The translations under genes and the position numbers were made by a program. The notes under the pieces are model-generated. The model had not been told where the DNA came from. It saw only the letters and a list, made by a program, of their open reading frames with translations, and made no database searches. From positions 1 to 32,000 of the forward strand of contig MTSL01000112.1 of the NCBI GenBank assembly GCA_002794465.1: a DNA stretch of 32,000 bases, given 5' to 3'. This document shows, piece by piece, positions 2,139 to 19,355 of the stretch. Every line of letters begins with the position of its first letter. Within the stretch, counting starts at the first letter, position 1. Source of the DNA: Paramicrosporidium saccamoebae KSL3. Lineage: Eukaryota; Fungi; Cryptomycota.

Positions 2139-2340
2139 CCCGTTGACCAATCATAATGGAGTACTGGTTATAGAAAAACTCCCGATTTGGGGTGTATTAA
2201 CATTCAACTTTTACTTATTACCGTCTCGTTAGCTTTTCTGTACACTCGAAAGCATTTAATATGTGCTTGGTTGCTCACTCATGGGGTTTTTGCAATCGGT
2301 GCATGCAGCACATTCCGGGATTGTGCCAGGGTCAGCTACG

Positions 2341-4596
2341 ATGCTTGCGTCGACATCATCGCTTTTTGCAGTTGACAAGGTACTGGAGCCGATCTACACT
2401 GGCGGCGCCTGTCATGTTAGTGTCGACTCTACTGAAAAGGAGCTGCTGCTTATGAGGTCGGGCTCTTTGTTTGCTCTCCGTGACCCTGAAACTGGTATCG
2501 CAGCGAGCATCCTTCAAATGGACGATGAAGAGAATAATGTGACCGTCTTTGCCATGAAAGATGCACAGACCTTGGTTACTTGCAATACCAATAATGTATT
2601 TGAAGTGTGGACGATGGGCTTGCCCGCCTCGCCTATCCACTCTTGGAAGGCTCATGCATCTCCCATTTTGGTACTGACCCATCATGCGACCCTTCCCCTT
2701 TTGGCCACCGGCTCGGCCGACCATGGCGTGCGAGTTTGGGATAGTTCAAAATCATACTGCACTCACAACCTAAAGGGTGTTCACGGAGCCATCGTGACTG
2801 TCCTTGCATTCCATCCTGATCCCAGCATTATGCACCTATTCTCTGCCTCTGAAGACGGCACCATTGCCGTATGGGATCTGCATGAGAGCAGGGCAATCAA
2901 GGCTTTGAAGGGGGCGCATGTAAGTTCTGTGACTGCTCTGTCTGTCAGTACTTGTGGGGGGCTATTACTGAGTGCCGGACGTGATCAGATTGTCAACATT
3001 TGGAATTTAAACCAAGCCTCGACAAAACCTACAAAGACTATTGCAGTCCTTGAAGCTGTAGAATCTGCGGGATGGCTCACTGACAAGCTGTTCTTCACGG
3101 CTGGTGAAAAGGGAATTGTCAGACTTTGGGATGCCGCTTCTGGTCAATGTGTTCTTAGTAGCGCTGTACTTGGCACTGCTGGACATTCTATTACTCAAGT
3201 AAAACTACTCAGAGAACAGCTGGTCGCCTTTACAAGCGATTTGTTCATTTTTTACTTGAATCCTGCCGATCTAAGCGTGTCGAGGACGATGGTTGGACAT
3301 CACGGGGAAATTACCGATTTGACAATTTGCAATGATCGAGTTGTACTGAGTACTAATGGACCGCAGTTACGTCTATACCAACAAGAACTGACCCACCAAT
3401 GTCGCCTGTTGGTGGGACATGACGAAGCTGTCATTTCACTAGTGTCCAAGGACGAGGTGATGGTTTCGGGCTCTCGCGACCACACTGCAATTGTGTGGAA
3501 TGACTTTGAAATGGTCTGTAAATTGGTAGGACACACAGATGTCGTCAGTGCAGTGTCAATGGGAAACAAAAGCACCGCTCTCATTGCTACCTCCTCTGCT
3601 GATATGACATTAAAATTGTGGAATTTTAATGGAAAGGAGGCAAAATTGGCGTGGACGAGCAAAGCTCATGAAAAGGACATTAATCATGTCTGCTTCACGC
3701 CAAATGACAAGAATATCATCACTACTTCTCAGGACAAGACGGTTCGAATTTGGAAAGTAGAGGACGGGAAGCTATTGGGGACAATCAAAGGCCACAAGCG
3801 TGGAGTTTGGAGTGCCGCAGTGTCCCCTGTGGAACAACTGCTTGCCACAGCGTCGGCTGATCGGACCATCAAGCTGTGGTCTCTGGGTGAAGACTTTAGC
3901 TGCTTAAAAACATTGGAAGGACACAACAACTCTGTTCTCTGCATAGAATTCAGCAAGGATGGGAGTAGACTATACAGTGCTGGCTCCGATGGTCTCGTTA
4001 AAGTATGGGATATCAAAAAGAGTGAATGCATCTGCACCATCGATGCCCATTCTGATCGGATCTGGACCATGTTGAGGACTGAAGACGAAACATTGCTGAC
4101 TGGGGATGCAAGTGGAATCCTAAAAGTATGGCGCGACATGAGTGAAGAGGAGGCCTTGGCTGCACAGATGCTCCGGGATGAGACAATTATCAAGGAGCAG
4201 CAGCTCTCAAATATGATCATGAGAAAGGACTACACCAATGCAATTTTATTGGCGATGCAACTGGAACAACCCCATAGGCTGTACACCTTTTTCGGTCAAA
4301 TTGTTGACGGGCGCAGCATTCAAGAATCGATCGATCTACTTGCCCATCTTTTGGCAGCGTTTGATGAAACTCAAATTGGAAAGCTGACATGTTGGATCCG
4401 CGATTGGAACACTAGTCTAAAACGAGCATACATTTCCCAATTGCTGCTGCATGTGATTCTGAAAAAGCACAAGTCGCCCGCTTTGAAGGAAGTATTTGGA
4501 CATATTCAGCCATACACTGAACGTCATTTTGAAAAGATTGACGATTTGCTGATTGGATCTCATCTGATAGACTTTGTCGTGAACAAGATTAAATAA
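2341..4596 (+). CDS. UTP13: U3 snoRNA-associated protein 13 / transducin beta-like 3 (SSU processome WD40 protein)
   Basis: Start taken at ATG 2341 (MLASTSSLFAVDKVLEPIYTGG, the typical EPIYTGG N-terminus). About 13 WD40 repeats are followed by a Utp13 C-terminal domain (EQQLSNM..DYTNAILLAMQLEQPHRL..WNTS..PYTERHFEKID). Confidence 0.95.
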   Translation: MLASTSSLFAVDKVLEPIYTGGACHVSVDSTEKELLLMRSGSLFALRDPETGIAASILQMDDEENNVTVFAMKDAQTLVTCNTNNVFEVWTMGLPASPIHSWKAHASPILVLTHHATLPLLATGSADHGVRVWDSSKSYCTHNLKGVHGAIVTVLAFHPDPSIMHLFSASEDGTIAVWDLHESRAIKALKGAHVSSVTALSVSTCGGLLLSAGRDQIVNIWNLNQASTKPTKTIAVLEAVESAGWLTDKLFFTAGEKGIVRLWDAASGQCVLSSAVLGTAGHSITQVKLLREQLVAFTSDLFIFYLNPADLSVSRTMVGHHGEITDLTICNDRVVLSTNGPQLRLYQQELTHQCRLLVGHDEAVISLVSKDEVMVSGSRDHTAIVWNDFEMVCKLVGHTDVVSAVSMGNKSTALIATSSADMTLKLWNFNGKEAKLAWTSKAHEKDINHVCFTPNDKNIITTSQDKTVRIWKVEDGKLLGTIKGHKRGVWSAAVSPVEQLLATASADRTIKLWSLGEDFSCLKTLEGHNNSVLCIEFSKDGSRLYSAGSDGLVKVWDIKKSECICTIDAHSDRIWTMLRTEDETLLTGDASGILKVWRDMSEEEALAAQMLRDETIIKEQQLSNMIMRKDYTNAILLAMQLEQPHRLYTFFGQIVDGRSIQESIDLLAHLLAAFDETQIGKLTCWIRDWNTSLKRAYISQLLLHVILKKHKSPALKEVFGHIQPYTERHFEKIDDLLIGSHLIDFVVNKIK

Positions 4597-4776
4597 AGAG
4601 TTTTGAGTGTGAGGGTGAGTGTGTGAGGATTAGAGTGAGAGAGGGATTAAAGAGTTGGGAATAGAGGTTATGAAACGACATTATGATAGGACATTATGGC
4701 ATATTATGGCATGATTACATTGTGAAAAGCCTCTGGTTCTCTAGATTTATACACAAAAAGGGGCAAATTCCTTAAT

Positions 4777-5184
4777 ATGGATGGACGGCCATGGAGCGCG
4801 CCAGTTCCTCGTCACAAGACGCCCGTGGCGCCGGATAAGACTCTTACTCATTGGCTTGCTATAAAGTCCACCCTCCCAAGAGTACGCGCTTTGATAGTCT
4901 AATTGTAGTGTTGGCCGTTGGGCTATTATACCCTCTCTGAGGTGCAGAAACATTGCACTATGGACGACTGTTGGATGATAATTCACGGGATGGTTTTTAA
5001 TGTGACTGCATATCTGCCTTACCATCCAGGAGGAGTTGATGTGCTGATGGAGTATGCTGGTCAGGATGTCACGGTGCCATTCAGTATTTAGGGCGATTGT
5101 GTTGATGTGGTAGGAGAGTATCATTCATGGGTGAACTGGGAGCAGATTCTAGATACGTGTCTTGTGGGCAGACTGTCCGAATAG
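4777..5184 (+). CDS. Cytochrome b5-like heme-binding protein (Irc21/CYB5R4 N-terminal type), 116 aa, introns 4882-4908 (27 nt) and 5084-5113 (30 nt)
   Basis: Spliced product MDGRPWSAPVPRHKTPVAPDKTLTHWLAIKSTLPR|CWPLGYYTLSEVQKHCTMDDCWMIIHGMVFNVTAYLPYHPGGVDVLMEYAGQDVTVPF|REYHSWVNWEQILDTCLVGRLSE. It has the HPGG heme ligand and the second His (YHSWVN). The track's minus-strand ORFs here are shadows. Confidence 0.93.
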
Positions 5185-5490
5185 GATGTTGTACTTTACA
5201 CCGTACAATCACTGTTGTGGTTGGTATTGTCGCGTAGTGGGGATAATACCACGGACGGGAAGGGGGTTGTTCACTGCTAATCCTAGAATAGTATGAATAC
5301 ACATTTCACTGCCCTTAAATATCCAACAACTAGGTCTTTTCCAAACTAGGGAACTATCTTCAAATACCCGACTAATCAATCCTCTATGTCACAATAGGGC
5401 GATTGGCACCGCATCATTACAAGTCTGGAATCAATATCATCTTTTGCAACTATATCAATGTAAAGTCGATTTCAGGCCTTTTCCAGTGAT
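4820..5490 (+). repeat. Direct repeat copy R1 (b5 gene body plus ~300 bp of 3' flank)
   Basis: Aligns by eye to 6777-7540. Shared anchors include ggataagactctt, ggctattataccctctctgaggtgcagaaaca, gtagtgggga(t)aataccacg, ctaa(t/c)cctagaat, taatcaatcctcta and gattggcaccgcatcattacaagtctggaatcaa. Boundaries are approximate. Confidence 0.92.
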
Positions 5491-5566
5491 AGCAAGCTAA
5501 AGAAGCGGCGGCAGGACACCAAAACATCATTCCTACTCCCCTAATTGGAAAATACTAAATCTGAGT

Positions 5567-6550
5567 TTATTGCTTGTTCCCCACGATGAAAACGGTTACA
5601 GCAACTTGGTCCTTGCAATAACGCCGAACGAACAAATTCCAATTGGCTTCAATGTCTTTGACCAGTCCAGGTACAAATTTAAGTGTCTCAAGGTTGTTGT
5701 TATTTGTAAGTGGTATAAACATGAATACCAAATCTCCAGGACGGACTTCTAGTGCATTCTCAGCAGGAAGCTCGCATAGAGGAATAATATTGTAAGAGTC
5801 ATAATGTAGTCTGGAACTAACCAGATCCCGCTTTTCCACTTTACCGTTCCTGGAAACAAGAGCAACGGCGCCACCTGAGACTCGCAGCTTTACCATTTGC
5901 GCCTCAATCTCGGCCGACAATGCAGGAGCCACTAAATTGGTCCTCATCTTTACCATAGTTTCCCCTATATTGAGGTCGACATTATTCAACGGGTTATGGT
6001 TCCTGTACCAACTAAGCACGGGTTCGGGCTCGGCGACAGCTTGTCGCTTTGCTGGCCAGGCTAAATCGTCGCCGTGACGCTTTCGTACAGGAGATGCGGA
6101 ATCTTGCGACGATGTATCGTGACCAATTTTAAAACCAAACATGACAATCTCTGCTTTTCCAAGATATGGGTCGTTCAAGATGGCCCCGTGACCTTGGTTC
6201 GGTGCATTCGAAATGTATTCAAAGATCTTACCTCTATCCGCATGGTCACCAAATAACACAATGAGGATCGAATCGCCTGCCTGTATAAACCCCTCACCAT
6301 TAGGGAAAAGCATCCCTTTGTGGGAGCCGAAAGTCACTGCGATGAAATTATCTCCATATACCCTAATTCTAAAAGGGTCTAAGGTCAGTTCAACGTGGAA
6401 TTTTTCTTTTTGCAGGCTATAAGTGGATGCAGTGAGTTCTTCCCGCACCGGCGGAATAAGACCGAAACGCTCGCCAAAGGCCAGCGCACCAAAAGAAGTG
6501 GTCACAAAAGAGAGACCACAAAAAACGCTGAAGAGTATGGACTGCATCAT
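5567..6550 (-). CDS. Orphan protein, ~327 aa, with predicted N-terminal signal peptide and an internal basic NLS-like motif
   Basis: Uninterrupted ORF 5567..6736. The most plausible start is MMQSILFSVFCGLSFVTTSFGALA at 6550 (hydrophobic core then small residues). It contains PVRKRHGDDLAWPAKRQ. No family recognised. Confidence 0.75.
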   Translation of the reverse strand: MMQSILFSVFCGLSFVTTSFGALAFGERFGLIPPVREELTASTYSLQKEKFHVELTLDPFRIRVYGDNFIAVTFGSHKGMLFPNGEGFIQAGDSILIVLFGDHADRGKIFEYISNAPNQGHGAILNDPYLGKAEIVMFGFKIGHDTSSQDSASPVRKRHGDDLAWPAKRQAVAEPEPVLSWYRNHNPLNNVDLNIGETMVKMRTNLVAPALSAEIEAQMVKLRVSGGAVALVSRNGKVEKRDLVSSRLHYDSYNIIPLCELPAENALEVRPGDLVFMFIPLTNNNNLETLKFVPGLVKDIEANWNLFVRRYCKDQVAVTVFIVGNKQ

Positions 6551-6776
6551 CCCCTGCTGACGCCATTCCATTCCCCATATGTAGGGCTTGGCATCAATTT
6601 CTATTGGTACATGCGCTTGTGGCTGTTCAACAATTGTCAATTTCTTAACTGCCTGATCCGATGGCGCTAGATGGTGAAATAGTCTAATTCTATGCGATAC
6701 TGAACGGATACCGCCCACATTACAAAAGCCTTCCAACTCTACTCGCTATTGATAGTGTGTGAGCAAACGCCAATAG

Positions 6777-7140
6777 CCGCCTGCGGCACCGGATAAGACT
6801 CTTCCCATTGGCTTGCTATAGTCCACTCTCCCAAGAGTACGTGCCTTGGTATGTTGATTGTGGTGCTGACCATTAGGCTATTATACCCTCTCTGAGGTGC
6901 AGAAACACTGCAGTATGGACGACTGTTGGATGATAATCCACGGGATAGTTTTTAATGTGACTGCATATCCACCTTATCATCCGGAAGGGGCTGATGTGCT
7001 GATGGAGTATGCTGGTCAGAATTTCGCGGTGCCATTCAGTATCTAGGATGATTGTGTTGATGTGGTAGGAGAGAATCATTGATGGGTGAACTGGGAGCAG
7101 ATTCCAGATACATGTCTTGTGGGTAGATTGTCCGAATAGG
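6777..7140 (+). pseudogene. Decayed duplicate of the cytochrome b5-like gene
   Basis: About 88% identical to 4820-5184, but it lacks the start codon region. It also has a 2-nt deletion (gctatagtcc vs gctataaagtcc), a destroyed intron-1 acceptor (ttgtgg vs ttgtag), HPGG changed to HPEG, and an in-frame TGA replacing TCA (cattgatgg). Confidence 0.92.
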
Positions 7141-7205
7141 GTGTTGTACTTTGCATCGTAGCGTCATGTAGTGGGGATGATACCACGTACCTTGTCAAGC
7201 GGGAA

Positions 7206-7270
7206 GAGACGAGGTGAAATGAAATGAGGCGAGATGAAGCGAGATGAGACGAAATAAGACGAAATGAAAA
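7206..7270 (+). repeat. Degenerate pentanucleotide microsatellite (GARRY) x13
   Basis: gagac gaggt gaaat gaaat gaggc gagat gaagc gagat gagac gaaat aagac gaaat gaaaa; absent at the equivalent position of R1. Confidence 0.9.
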
Positions 7271-7362
7271 CTCGTTTGCTGCTAACCCTAGAATCACAAG
7301 GATGCAACTCCCACTGTTCTCCAATACCCAATTAATCAATCCTCTACATCACAGTCGAGTTA

Positions 7363-7450
7363 CACCTGTGATTTATATCGTATAATATTGTGCTTTGTAT
7401 CATAAAATAGTGATTATTAAATGGTGCTGTGCATCACAAAATCACTGGTG
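7363..7450. mobile_element. Possible 88-bp MITE-like insertion with 12-bp terminal inverted repeats
   Basis: The left end CACCTGTGATTT matches the reverse complement of the right end AAATCACTGGTG (CACCAGTGATTT) at 11/12. The interior is AT-rich, and the segment is absent from R1. No clear target-site duplication. Confidence 0.4.
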
Positions 7451-7650
7451 AGATTGGCACCGCATCATTACAAGTCTGGAATCAACATCATCTTTTGCAA
7501 CGATATCAATGTAAAGTCGGTACCATGCCTTTTGCAGCTATACCTAGGCCATAGTCTACAAGTTGTCTGGTACCACACTAGATGGTGCCAAAACCATATT
7601 GCACATTACGCCCTGAATCGTAGCCAATCAACGCCAACGCCAACACTCGG

Positions 7651-9723
7651 ATGAGCACACATCGAGTGATACCGGCAGCGCGGGTAAACCCGACCAACGA
7701 GCTGAATGTCGACAATTTGTTCATAAGTCCGTCATCGGGAATGCTGTACACTGAATGGATTACCGCCCTGCAAAATGCTGCAGTGGACAACGCACAAACG
7801 GTGCAGATAATGCGGGTGCTGCGGAATCGACTTTTGGGACATGAAGCACTCAAGCTTTATTTTGTACAAAAGGCGGGTCTGGTGGGAACTTTGACGCGCT
7901 TTATGGATGCTGCGGCATTACCCGCCGTGCAAAGAGAGGCCATTACCATATTGGGCAGCATTGCTCATGGGGGGACGCGAGAACTGGACGCATTGCTGTG
8001 GCACAATGTTCCCCAATTACTGTTAGAGGTGGTACGAAGGGCGGATGTTGGAAGTGAGGAGGGAAAGAAATTGGCCGAGGCGGGTCTGAGAGCGCTGCGG
8101 ATCATCTACCGACACACTGCCACACCCCGAGAACTGCCATTCCGTCCGGAATATCTGGGAACATTGTTACATCTGTTAGAGAGTAATGAGTTGGGAAGGA
8201 TTCGGGAATATTGCGCCGTATTGATTGCAAATTGCTGTGATCAGACGGATAAACAAGCGCTGCTTTGTGAAAAGGGAGTTCCCAGAGTGGCAGTGAAGAT
8301 GGCTCTATCCAGTCGTGGAGCGCCATACAGTCTCTTGGAGGCATCGCTGGATCTGATTGCTGCATTGACGCGCGATAACCTGACGGGAGTGGCACAGATT
8401 GCAAACGAAACAGCGCTAATTACTATGCTATTTGATCTGTTGCAACGGAAAAGCACAGCCGAAATTCGAATCTTTGCTGCGCTCTGTTTGGCCAATATCT
8501 TCCAACGGGAAGAGACATCGACAGATCCAAGAATTGTCACAATTCTTCTACCGAGTCTGAGTACGTTGATGGCGGGAGATAGTCCCGTCCGAGCTCGGGC
8601 TGCAGAAGTATTGGCTCTGCTTCTTACAGATTCGGAAACCCTTCAAGTAGCCGCCTGTGATGCCGATGTCATTAGTCGATTGGCTGCCATGCTAAAGACG
8701 CCGAGGAGTGAGAGTGAATGCGAGGCGGCTCTCCTCGCCCTGGCCGTGGTGGCATCATATAAGGAGGAATGTCGACGTTTGGTGATTGATGCCAAAGTGC
8801 TGCCGTCCATTCTGACTTCGATGGAAAGTGCCAATGTGGGAGTTCGGAGTGCGGCTTGTCAATGCACCCGCAGTCTCTCTCGCAGTGTCAAGAATCTGCG
8901 TACTTCGCTCGTCGATGCGGGAATGGCCTCCCCATTGCTCCGACTTTTGGAAGATTCCTCCCCACTGGTGCAAAAGACCGCCTGTGCTGCCCTGTGCAAT
9001 CTCGTTTTGGACTTTAGTCCGATGAAGGAAACGGTGTTGAAAGAGGGCGGCGTTCGACGATTGGTCGAATTGGTGGGATCTACTGATTCGGATCTGCGCT
9101 ATAATGCTCTGTGGGCTCTGAAGAATCTTTTGTATTTGGCCGACACCCCCATCAAGACGGCGACCATGCAGCTCATTACTTACCCGCGATTGCAGCAGCT
9201 GGCCAATGATCCGGCCATGCTGGTACAGGAGCAGGCGCTGAATTTGATCCGCAATTTGGTCTGTGAAAAGGAACAGGACGTCAATGAGGTGCTCTCCTGT
9301 TTTGGTCAGGAAAGCTTAATTAAGCTCTTGGAGTCTAAAATGGCCTCTCCCAAAGAGGAAGTTCTCGTCCATTCCCTGTATATTGTGGCCAACTCCTGTA
9401 CGGCTGCATCCGCTATTCCCAAGGAGGCTGCCCTGGAGAGTGATGTAATCATGAAAAGGGTTGCATCGCTACTGCAGCCCGGACAGCCCAGTCAGCTTCA
9501 GCTGGCCTCTCTGTGGTGTGTCATTAATCTGACTTGGACAGATGACACTGGCAGCTCTGAGCGTATTACCAAGCTGCGTGGACTCGGCATTGAACGAATG
9601 CTGCAGGGACTGTTGCGTGCCGGTCTCGCCCACGATGTCCGCGATCGTGTGCAAACAGCGTTGGACAATTTCTCTGCTTTGGATCCGCCCCGTGCTCGGC
9701 CCGAGAACCGTCGTACTAATTAG
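7651..9723 (+). CDS. ARMC8: Armadillo repeat-containing protein 8 / Vid28 (Gid5) subunit of the GID/CTLH E3 ligase
   Basis: 690-aa ARM-repeat ORF with ARMC8-type segments: LRNRLLGHEALKLYFVQ, RSAACQCTRSLSRSVKNLRTSLVDAG, ALCNLVLDFSPMK, NALWALKNL and QEQALNLIRNL. Confidence 0.9.
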   Translation: MSTHRVIPAARVNPTNELNVDNLFISPSSGMLYTEWITALQNAAVDNAQTVQIMRVLRNRLLGHEALKLYFVQKAGLVGTLTRFMDAAALPAVQREAITILGSIAHGGTRELDALLWHNVPQLLLEVVRRADVGSEEGKKLAEAGLRALRIIYRHTATPRELPFRPEYLGTLLHLLESNELGRIREYCAVLIANCCDQTDKQALLCEKGVPRVAVKMALSSRGAPYSLLEASLDLIAALTRDNLTGVAQIANETALITMLFDLLQRKSTAEIRIFAALCLANIFQREETSTDPRIVTILLPSLSTLMAGDSPVRARAAEVLALLLTDSETLQVAACDADVISRLAAMLKTPRSESECEAALLALAVVASYKEECRRLVIDAKVLPSILTSMESANVGVRSAACQCTRSLSRSVKNLRTSLVDAGMASPLLRLLEDSSPLVQKTACAALCNLVLDFSPMKETVLKEGGVRRLVELVGSTDSDLRYNALWALKNLLYLADTPIKTATMQLITYPRLQQLANDPAMLVQEQALNLIRNLVCEKEQDVNEVLSCFGQESLIKLLESKMASPKEEVLVHSLYIVANSCTAASAIPKEAALESDVIMKRVASLLQPGQPSQLQLASLWCVINLTWTDDTGSSERITKLRGLGIERMLQGLLRAGLAHDVRDRVQTALDNFSALDPPRARPENRRTN

Positions 9724-19282: not shown

Positions 19283-19354
19283 TCCGCATTGGTCTAGTGG
19301 CTAGGATTCCGCGCTTTCACCGCGGCGGCCGGGGTTCGATTCCCCGATGCGGAA
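19283..19354 (+). tRNA. tRNA-Glu (anticodon TTC)
   Basis: Acceptor stem TCCGCAT/ATGCGGA, D arm GGTCTAGTGGCTAGGA, anticodon arm CCGCG-CTTTCAC-CGCGG and T arm CCGGG-GTTCGATT-CCCCG. 72 nt, no intron. Confidence 0.97.
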
Positions 19355-19355
19355 C

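Follow-up and report, generated by a model that had tools for sequence, protein, structure and literature searches.

A decayed second copy of a cytochrome b5 region beside a clade-restricted gene of Paramicrosporidium saccamoebae may reflect an old duplication in situ

The tandem secreted-protein families of intracellular parasites, for instance the multigene families of Microsporidia and the effector clusters of fungi and oomycetes, form the class with which the gene family treated here can be compared. The likeness extends to small size, fast evolution, restriction to one clade, the absence of a Pfam domain, and a signal-peptide-like N terminus, as well as to a conserved proximal promoter, head-to-tail growth, and homogenised 5' ends of neighbouring copies. 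Unlike members of that class, the copy in our window (the whole stretch of 32,000 nucleotides analysed, positions 1 to 32,000 of contig MTSL01000112.1 of P. saccamoebae KSL3) is a singleton and is inverted relative to a spacer element, S; in addition, the arrays of the family lie, as far as the short contigs show, between housekeeping genes and not in repeat-rich or subtelomeric regions. Local duplicated pseudogenes are a further point of reference. As in those, the decayed cytochrome b5 copy described below has the orientation of its parent, lies 2 kb from it, has lost its 5' end and promoter, and carries stops, frameshifts, and simple-repeat expansions; such copies are usually adjacent, however, whereas here an unrelated gene separates the two. 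The intact b5 gene resembles the soluble RLF/Irc21/CYB5R4-N-type b5 proteins (8tgb), including their N-terminal extension, with no notable difference. The arrangement also recalls Campbell integration or eccDNA reintegration, from which it differs in the lack of any known circle, donor, recombinase, or empty site, and in that the repeats hold a truncated host gene.

Repeat search and alignments across the window delimited two direct copies of a 0.7-kb segment made up of the cytochrome b5 gene and its downstream spacer, R1 (4810 to ~5505) and R2 (6768 to ~7555), the second of which lies beyond the family gene and is decayed. The features of the locus are as follows.

2263 to 4596, plus strand: UTP13, the left neighbour; ORF as listed, with Pfam Utp13 (PF08625, 2.3e-31) and WD40 propellers.
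4777 to 5184, plus strand: intact RLF/Irc21-type cytochrome b5, 116 aa; exons 4777-4881, 4909-5083, and 5114-5184.
4810 to 5505, plus strand: R1, the left repeat copy; b5 from codon 12, S, and the terminal block.
5199 to 5393, plus strand: S copy 1, non-coding, with an R1-specific deletion of ~40 bp and a local duplication of ~45 bp.
5392 to 5505, plus strand: R1 terminal block, 87% identical to 7443-7555; no match elsewhere in the sequences compared.
5567 to 6550, minus strand: core of PSACC_01550, 327 aa, the supposed orphan; conserved hydrophobic N terminus MMQSILFSVFCGLSFVTTSFGALA.
6551 to 6616, minus strand: family-type proximal upstream module, CCAATAGAA ... CATATGGGG ... ATGATG.
6617 to 6767, no strand: unique spacer from the promoter module of the gene to R2; a homologue was searched for and none was found.
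6768 to 7139, plus strand: unprocessed b5 pseudogene, 5'-truncated, without codons 1-11 and promoter.
6768 to 7555, plus strand: R2, the right repeat copy, from repeat search and alignments.
7140 to 7353, plus strand: S copy 2, with an internal low-complexity expansion at 7206-7269.
7354 to 7442, plus strand: R2-specific insertion, including a 22-bp tandem repeat in two copies (7367-7409).
7443 to 7555, plus strand: R2 terminal block, 96-208 bp upstream of the ARMC8 ATG.
7651 to 9723, plus strand: ARMC8, the right neighbour; Pfam Arm repeats, homologues named ARMC8.

The order along the locus is thus R1 (b5 and flank), the minus-strand gene at 5567-6550, and R2 (pseudo-b5 and flank), with a start-to-start spacing of the repeats of 1955-2051 bp, and the alignments bear out the earlier note, which had described ~0.7-kb direct repeats with an intact b5 gene on the left and a dead copy on the right of a single gene. 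R1 and R2 are 83% identical across 711 aligned columns, and the ungapped 336-bp b5 core reaches 89%; R2 is the longer copy owing to low-complexity expansions at 7206-7269 and 7367-7409 (TRF). No significant homology between the two extends past the repeat limits on either side, and a match left of R2, in which ATG would have become ATT, was rejected as an extension of the repeat since it is not significant. No inverted repeats were found. The same note had seen neither transposase nor LTR, which agrees with the repeat search and the ORF and domain content and holds for TIRs as well: the ORFs comprise the family gene and housekeeping genes only, none encoding a transposase or RT, and R1 and R2 consist of host gene and spacer, not of terminal repeats of element sequence with short target-site duplications.

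The intact b5 gene is interrupted by two mini-introns of only 27 and 30 nt, on account of which it was missed in genome annotation; GCA_002794465.1 in GenBank has no gene called at 4777-5184, and one should be added there. Its product matches Pfam Cyt-b5 (7.1e-26) and PDB entry 8tgb (RLF; 1.9e-23, residues 9-114), and both axial haem-ligand histidines are present in the aligned HPGG and YHSW motifs. The spliced product is collinear with the b5 of a relative (L003), which has no intron 1 and shares the position of intron 2. By these matches, the left b5 is an ordinary RLF-type orthologue.

The copy in R2 begins at codon 12 and consequently has no ATG. It carries three stops (K14>TAG, 6774-6776; W37>TGA, 6867-6869; S98>TGA, 7080-7082) and, in exon 1, deletions of 1 nt and 2 nt that both shift the frame; the acceptor of intron 1 is lost (AG>GG), the haem motif has become HPEG instead of HPGG, and a residual Pfam Cyt-b5 signal of 9e-17 is obtained when the stop is masked. 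Both mini-introns and ~370 bp of the non-coding 3' flank are kept in R2, indicating that the copy was made from DNA and not from RNA. With its homology to the parent, its lesions, and its retained introns and flank, the R2 b5 is an unprocessed duplicated pseudogene. The differences between b5 and pseudo-b5 amount to 5/88, 7/89, and 14/88 at codon positions 1, 2, and 3, respectively, and to 11/57 in the introns, a pattern consistent with one copy under selection and one in decay. Omega between the two is 0.18 in what is a small sample, too small for the death of the pseudogene to be dated by this value as dead-on-arrival or later, and that approach was rejected.

The same divergence bears on whether the doubling could come from mis-assembly, for instance from the head-to-tail joining of two haplotypes that had diverged. 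The draft assembly does consist of short contigs, those bearing family loci being 5-8 kb long; however, the copies differ by 11-27% with many indels, which makes an artefact of collapse or expansion implausible, and one copy is truncated at its 5' end, holds three stops, and has microsatellite expansions of its own. Moreover, the flanking single-copy genes show no such doubling, and assemblers collapse near-identical repeats and do not generate diverged ones. We consider this explanation very improbable.

The neighbouring genes identify the older of the two copies. UTP13 orthologues lie upstream of b5 in L003, L007, and L008, ARMC8 directly follows b5 in L007 and L008, and synteny of ARMC8 with Rad4-Ssl1-AAA18-RuvX is kept in six relatives, confirming UTP13-b5-ARMC8, whose conservation had been left to be checked, as the ancestral order. 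R1 keeps the ancestral adjacency to UTP13, its ATG and 5' flank being in place as they are in L003, L007, L008, and L009, whereas R2 starts only at codon 12; of the two, R1 is therefore ancestral. In sister lineages, the gap between b5 and ARMC8 is repeatedly home to unrelated lineage-specific genes, and the family gene has no homology to the genes X (769 aa), Y (448 aa), and W (1369 aa) found in this slot in relatives. Between X and Y there is weak collinearity (E 0.02). Locus L005, from the nearest relative, is without the 5' end of ARMC8. A chimeric protein query (UTP13-C/b5/ARMC8-N) for the sister-species locus returned more distant UTP13 matches only, one of which (L010) has no b5 at all.

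The gene flanked by the repeats had been called an orphan but is not one: a profile search finds a family of eight proteins at E<=1e-17, including the annotated P. saccamoebae paralogues PSACC_00887 and PSACC_00139, and tblastn added copies in L012 and L013 that are unannotated or partial. At least five members belong to P. saccamoebae, and more are found in environmental relatives; the family is small, fast-evolving (omega 0.3-0.6), and restricted to the Paramicrosporidium clade. All full-length members have a conserved hydrophobic N terminus followed by ALAFGERFG, and this signal-peptide-like N terminus suggests that the proteins may be secreted; a KR...KR linker is conserved as well. An alignment of seven family 5' ends places the true start of the window gene at the ATG at 6550. 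The GenBank model PSACC_01550, of 420 aa, has a spurious N-terminal extension that runs into R2 and should be shortened. A profile of six other family 5' ends finds a single match in 4500-7800, at 6616-6429(-) (E=1.2e-29), and transcription would be expected to start at about 6560-6600. Omega between the gene at 5567-6550 and its L001 copy is 0.31; it is a real gene. The family protein has no sequence match in Pfam or PDB. AlphaFold gave a pLDDT of 33 from a 2-sequence input, and a pLDDT of 73 with a pTM of 0.47 from an 8-sequence input. The best Foldseek matches of the model (pTM 0.47) are PP2C (PPM) phosphatases at E ~5e-5, yet with TM-scores of just 0.28-0.41, and D273 alone is an Asp invariant across the family, whereas the PP2C fold calls for conserved metal-binding aspartates.

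Head-to-tail tandem pairs with periods between 1268 and 1609 bp are present at all four other loci seen (L001, L011, L012, and L013), while the member in the window is single. The paralogues are not themselves flanked by duplicated host sequence, a pattern for which the earlier note had proposed looking, but form plain head-to-tail arrays; nor is the housekeeping neighbourhood special, as had been supposed, given that every family locus seen adjoins housekeeping genes (TIM, RPL11) in this compact genome. Neighbouring copies in L013 have homogenised 5' ends, with 83% nucleotide identity over 189 bp compared with 36% amino acid identity overall. A metagenome scan with the family alignment gave no confirmed locus, in a collection without even the contig of L001. 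The genome paper makes no mention of introns, secreted families, or tandem arrays (PMC5701793).

With regard to relative age, dS is 0.64 between the family gene and copy A of L001, in the nearest relative, and 0.65 between ARMC8 and its counterpart in the same relative, whereas between R1 and R2 it is 0.30, with divergences of 0.19 in the introns and 0.27 in S. The dS of the gene therefore equals the species divergence, the neutral divergence of the repeat is ~0.2-0.3, and by these distances the repeat is younger than the family gene.

The b5-distal part of the repeat does not fit the description of the repeats as host sequence, which holds for the b5 part: the ~200 bp of S have a homologue on another contig, MTSL01000067 (L012 4412-4620), in the spacer that separates tandem family genes. 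In nhmmer searches with the L012 spacer, S copy 1 is found at E=8.4e-6 and S copy 2 at E=1e-13, and, in the sister species, sequence upstream of P0129 shows partial homology to S (E=2e-5). Within the window, the 20-mer GTAGTGGGGATAATACCACG occurs in R1 and R2 only, with 0 occurrences expected by chance; six metagenome matches to the S motif, to the 20-mer alone, were rejected, being about the number expected by chance. The idea that S is a known RNA or derives from a tRNA was rejected, as neither Rfam nor ARAGORN gave a match and no conserved fold was convincing. A b5 remnant was sought in the array spacer of a relative (L001 779-1358) by Smith-Waterman comparison against shuffles, tblastn, and Pfam, and there is none. 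As both R1 and R2 contain S, and S has its homologue in the spacer of a family array, family DNA stood beside b5 before the duplication.

On this basis, we regard it as somewhat better than an even bet that the locus is the product of an old segmental duplication at the DNA level, in situ, at a site that already held family DNA, and does not record the arrival of a gene from another place. Starting from the ancestral order UTP13, b5, ARMC8, the gap between b5 and ARMC8 would have gained, in the P. saccamoebae lineage, a family member, and S directly after b5. A unit of ~1.96 kb, running from codon 12 of b5 through S and the terminal block and including the family gene and its promoter, would then have been duplicated in tandem, through unequal exchange or replication slippage, as the family grows at every other locus seen, and the distal copy of the family gene would later have been deleted, leaving R1-gene-R2. 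The b5 copy without promoter or ATG would have decayed, the left b5 staying under purifying selection. A tandem duplication with subsequent loss of one copy had been put forward earlier as an alternative, and it matches the way in which the family demonstrably expands. An intervening gene between b5 copies requires either a lost second gene copy or a templated copy that was not tandem, and in a one-step variant a templated, non-tandem copy of b5-S-block would have been inserted upstream of ARMC8.

This duplication in situ has costs of its own. The whole 32 kb contains no second copy of the gene, as had been noted before, and no remnant of one; specifically, no family-gene remnant is found in the 95 bp that separate R2 from ARMC8 (7556-7650), left of R1 (4597-4809), or inside the terminal blocks of the repeats, which tells against the tandem model and obliges it to assume an extra clean deletion or a templated event with two switches. 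S lies on the plus strand, opposite to the window family gene, whereas in L012 it is in sense and directly 5' of the gene; the layout before duplication was hence not the canonical family unit, and an earlier rearrangement is left unexplained by the model. Site patterns of 16/17/15 place the S on the unlinked contig as close to R1 and R2 as these are to each other, which also counts against the in-situ model. The three S copies (R1, R2, and the MTSL01000067 array) form a star tree and seem to have arisen at about the same time, and these equal distances hint at exchange between loci around the time of the duplication.

The missing second copy and the contemporaneous S on the unlinked contig would suit an insertion, in which b5 and spacer were first duplicated in tandem, or as a ~0.7-kb target in staggered-break repair, and a family gene copied from an array at another locus was inserted at the junction, the second b5 losing its promoter and first 11 codons. 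No trace of a second gene copy need then be accounted for, the same-age unlinked S indicates a transfer of DNA among family loci around then, the outer junctions UTP13|R1 and R2|ARMC8 are both of ancestral type (b5 directly precedes ARMC8 in L007 and L008), and the omega of 0.18, from few sites, is below the dead-on-arrival expectation, so that the second b5 could have worked for a time. However, the family-associated S inside both repeats places family DNA there before the duplication, the gene is accompanied only by its own 65-bp family promoter module in otherwise unique flanks in which no donor-array spacer is recognisable, and at least as many steps are needed as in the duplication in situ. 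Insertion repair is not known to produce target duplications of 0.7 kb with any regularity, and this also speaks against an insertion. Overall, we consider it unlikely.

Nothing in the data requires the Campbell-type or break-repair origins that the earlier note had advanced. In the former, a circle (for example, eccDNA from a family locus) carrying the gene and a b5-S segment would have entered the chromosomal b5-S by a single crossover; one insert bracketed by direct repeats is what such a crossover leaves, the repeats could in principle mediate excision, and an S of the same age at another locus is compatible with a diffusible intermediate. A circle bearing b5 could stem only from this locus or its allele, however, which presupposes that the gene already stood beside b5, and integration into a gene-bearing chromosome yields R-gene-R-gene and not R-gene-R. 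A recombinase, an att-like site, and a donor were looked for and none was found; R2 is cut inside the b5 coding sequence with no mark of a crossover site at that point, and the other family loci are plain tandem arrays. As the repeats are old (~20-27% neutral divergence), looping-out today would be inefficient. We rate this integration as quite improbable. About equally improbable is that S is a recombination-prone spacer module and that family loci exchanged DNA by homology, perhaps via a circular or ectopic intermediate, which would have seeded S at another locus and also made R1-gene-R2; if true, this compact rozellid genome would shuffle genes for likely secreted proteins, and pieces of adjacent host genes with them, independently of transposons.

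Taken as an old duplication in situ, the locus would be a tidy example of a compact parasite genome remodelling one intergenic slot. It would say something about the movement of such genes only if S turned out to mediate exchange between loci. In addition, the analysis defines a previously unrecognised family with a conserved promoter module and a signal-peptide-like N terminus, whose proteins are reasonable candidates for host interaction in this intranuclear parasite of amoebae.

The window covers the first 32 kb of MTSL01000112.1, a contig of GCA_002794465.1. A repeat search recovered five families of direct repeats in collinear order, at spacings of 1934-2051 bp, and found no inverted repeat. 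Gapped local alignment merged these families into two copies, R1 and R2, which are 83% identical across 711 aligned columns and 89% identical in an ungapped 336-bp core; tandem expansions of low-complexity sequence, at 7206-7269 and 7367-7409, make R2 ~90 bp the longer of the two. Outward similarity in the left and right flanks did not rise above shuffled controls, indicating that the repeat limits are real. The arrangement described in the earlier note, a gene enclosed by direct copies with an intact b5 on the left and a dead b5 on the right, is confirmed.

Features of the locus (window coordinates)
4777-5184: intact RLF/Irc21-type cytochrome b5 gene, in the left copy
4810-~5505: R1, left copy of the direct repeat
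5199-5393, plus strand: S, non-coding element just after the b5 stop, in R1
5567-6550, minus strand: family gene, 327 aa
6768-~7555: R2, right copy of the repeat, with pseudo-b5
7140-7353, plus strand: S in R2

The b5 gene is unannotated, the GenBank record having no gene at its position. It contains one intron of 27 nt at 4882-4908, which has GT..AG ends and holds an in-frame stop, and one of 30 nt at 5084-5113, and the spliced 116-aa product matches Pfam Cyt-b5 (7e-26) and the solved RLF protein 8tgb (1.9e-23, residues 9-114), with both haem histidines present. The corresponding introns in orthologues from relatives measure 35-44 nt; the orthologue on contig L003 encodes the same protein, lacks intron 1, and has an intron at position 2, and the one on contig L007 has an intron 1 of 44 nt, which together support the two-intron model. 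On sequence grounds, the left b5 is functional. Between UTP13 and b5, the stretch that precedes the b5 start (4604-4717) is filled with short tandem repeats of TGAGTG (x3.3) and of 13-bp and 10-bp units. The R2 copy begins at codon 12 and has three stops (K14>TAG, W37>TGA, S98>TGA), one 1-nt and one 2-nt deletion, and an AG>GG change at the intron-1 acceptor; both introns are present, so it was copied as DNA. Differences between the copies at codon positions 1, 2, and 3 (5/88, 7/89, and 14/88) and in introns (11/57), with a dS of 0.30 and an omega of 0.18 (NG86), fit one selected and one decaying copy, with too few sites to tell whether the latter was dead on arrival. Mis-assembly is very unlikely, since the copies have diverged and R2 has decayed independently.

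The enclosed gene matches PSACC_01550 with 100% identity; the species, Paramicrosporidium saccamoebae, is a rozellid that parasitizes amoebae within the nucleus. Inside the gene's minus-strand open reading frame (5567-6736), an ATG-ATG at 6550 leads into a hydrophobic stretch resembling a signal peptide; all relatives share this start, which is preceded by a conserved module, CCAATAGAA ... CACATGGG ... ATGATG. A profile of six other family 5' ends matches 6616-6429 on the minus strand (E=1e-29) and has no second match in 4500-7800. The 420-aa GenBank model adds 93 residues before this start (6551-6873, minus strand), among them an exon that lies opposite the b5 pseudogene; because all family members and the promoter module point to the ATG at 6550, that model is over-extended at its N terminus, running into the antisense strand of R2.

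The gene had been taken for an orphan, which was not borne out: a word-indexed search found one relative only (P0002), whereas an exhaustive profile search recovered a family (P0129 to P0134 and P0136; E values of 1e-70 to 1e-4) that includes PSACC_00887 (P0131) and PSACC_00139 (P0132), both of P. saccamoebae. By tblastn, head-to-tail pairs occur at all other recovered loci, with repeat periods of 1268 bp (L011) and 1414 bp (L013), and none of the four is bracketed by a host duplication, the feature that the earlier note had proposed to look for around paralogues.

Family arrays at the other loci
L001, sister species: two family copies
L011, sister species: two family copies, adjoining TIM
L012, MTSL01000067: PSACC_00887 and a copy starting at 4682
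L013, MTSL01000012: 362-aa copy and PSACC_00139, adjoining RPL11

The family matched no Pfam or PDB sequence. AlphaFold modeling of eight members (pLDDT 73) gave two alpha/beta domains with a disordered linker between them (residues 147-172 of the window protein). The linker's conserved dibasic KR motifs, with K168 and R169 invariant, may represent a Kex2-type processing site. The best Foldseek matches are PP2C phosphatases, with TM-scores of just 0.28-0.41 and catalytic aspartates not conserved, and the predicted resemblance serves as a lead only. In the L013 pair, the promoter-proximal and signal-peptide-coding parts (688-876 and 2102-2290) are 83% identical in DNA, whereas the proteins are overall just ~36% identical, which suggests gene conversion or strong selection limited to the 5' end.

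S has a homologue in L012 at 4412-4620, in the spacer that directly precedes the CCAAT module of a family gene there. The homology was first traced through a 28-nt BLAST match; nhmmer with this spacer detects R2 (E=1e-13), R1 (E=8e-6), and, in the sister species, the sequence upstream of P0129 (7e-4; 2e-5 in a smaller search). The earlier description of the repeats as host sequence therefore holds for the b5 part and fails for S, and the presence of S in both copies implies that the family already adjoined b5 when the repeat formed. Insertion of the gene between pre-existing b5 duplicates is possible but requires extra assumptions. Over 121 well-aligned columns, the site patterns (R1=R2, 16; R1=L012, 17; R2=L012, 15; all different, 1) and p-distances of 0.26-0.28 describe three equidistant copies in an unsaturated star tree; the unlinked L012 copy is therefore as old as the R1/R2 split. 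S matched no known RNA and gave no convincing fold, and metagenome matches to an S 20-mer were rejected as chance. In L012, 4.5 tandem copies of a 58-bp unit (89% matches) occupy the spacer between the two family genes at 4147-4405, immediately upstream of S.

Synteny was compared in six contigs of uncultured relatives reached through ARMC8 homologues. ARMC8-Rad4-Ssl1-AAA18-RuvX is kept in all six, and the region upstream of ARMC8 varies.

Arrangements upstream of ARMC8
L007, L008 (~1500-1725): UTP13-b5-ARMC8, empty gap
L003, L004: 769-aa unrelated gene X in the gap, plus strand (L003 7545-9854)
L009, 819-2165: 448-aa gene Y, plus strand, signal-peptide-like N terminus
L010, 2523-6632: 1369-aa novel gene after UTP13; b5 absent

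The genes at these positions are domain-less and lineage-specific and differ between related uncultured rozellids; X shows weak collinearity with Y (E 0.02), and none of the three is related to the family gene. The ARMC8 neighbor-joining tree groups the window with L005, then with L003 and L006, with L007 and L008 more basal. The ancestral order is therefore UTP13-b5-ARMC8, and lineage-specific genes recur in the gap between b5 and ARMC8; the interval looks like a gene-turnover hotspot inside an otherwise rigid syntenic block. The best-conserved DNA by far between the window and L003 is a tRNA-Glu(TTC) at 19283-19355, 97% identical to L003 21331-21408.

ARMC8 of the window and its nearest relative, L005, differ by a dS of 0.65 (omega 0.045), and the family gene and L001 copy A differ by 0.64 (omega 0.31), so the gene lineage dates back to the species split; at a divergence of 0.19-0.30, the R1/R2 repeat is clearly younger. 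We favor an in situ origin, in which family DNA (S) would have adjoined b5, a ~1.96-kb unit would then have been duplicated, and the distal family-gene copy would have been lost; a single templated non-tandem copy would be a variant. This is favored because S lies in both repeat copies, tandem expansion occurs at every other family locus, and no mobile-element feature was found at the locus. Three observations weigh against it: no remnant of another gene copy was found, S and the family gene point in opposite directions, and an unlinked locus carries an S copy of the same age. The Campbell-type integration put forward earlier is possible, but it demands extra assumptions, and a circle with b5 sequence could derive from this same locus only. 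Of the earlier interpretation, the synteny and the absence of mobile-element features stand, and the orphan status and the purely host repeat do not. The locus presents known processes in a new instance, combining a segmental duplication with an unprocessed pseudogene and a tandem family restricted to one lineage, and the analysis has useful by-products: an unannotated b5 gene, a corrected PSACC_01550 model, one unexplained element, S, and a newly defined family.
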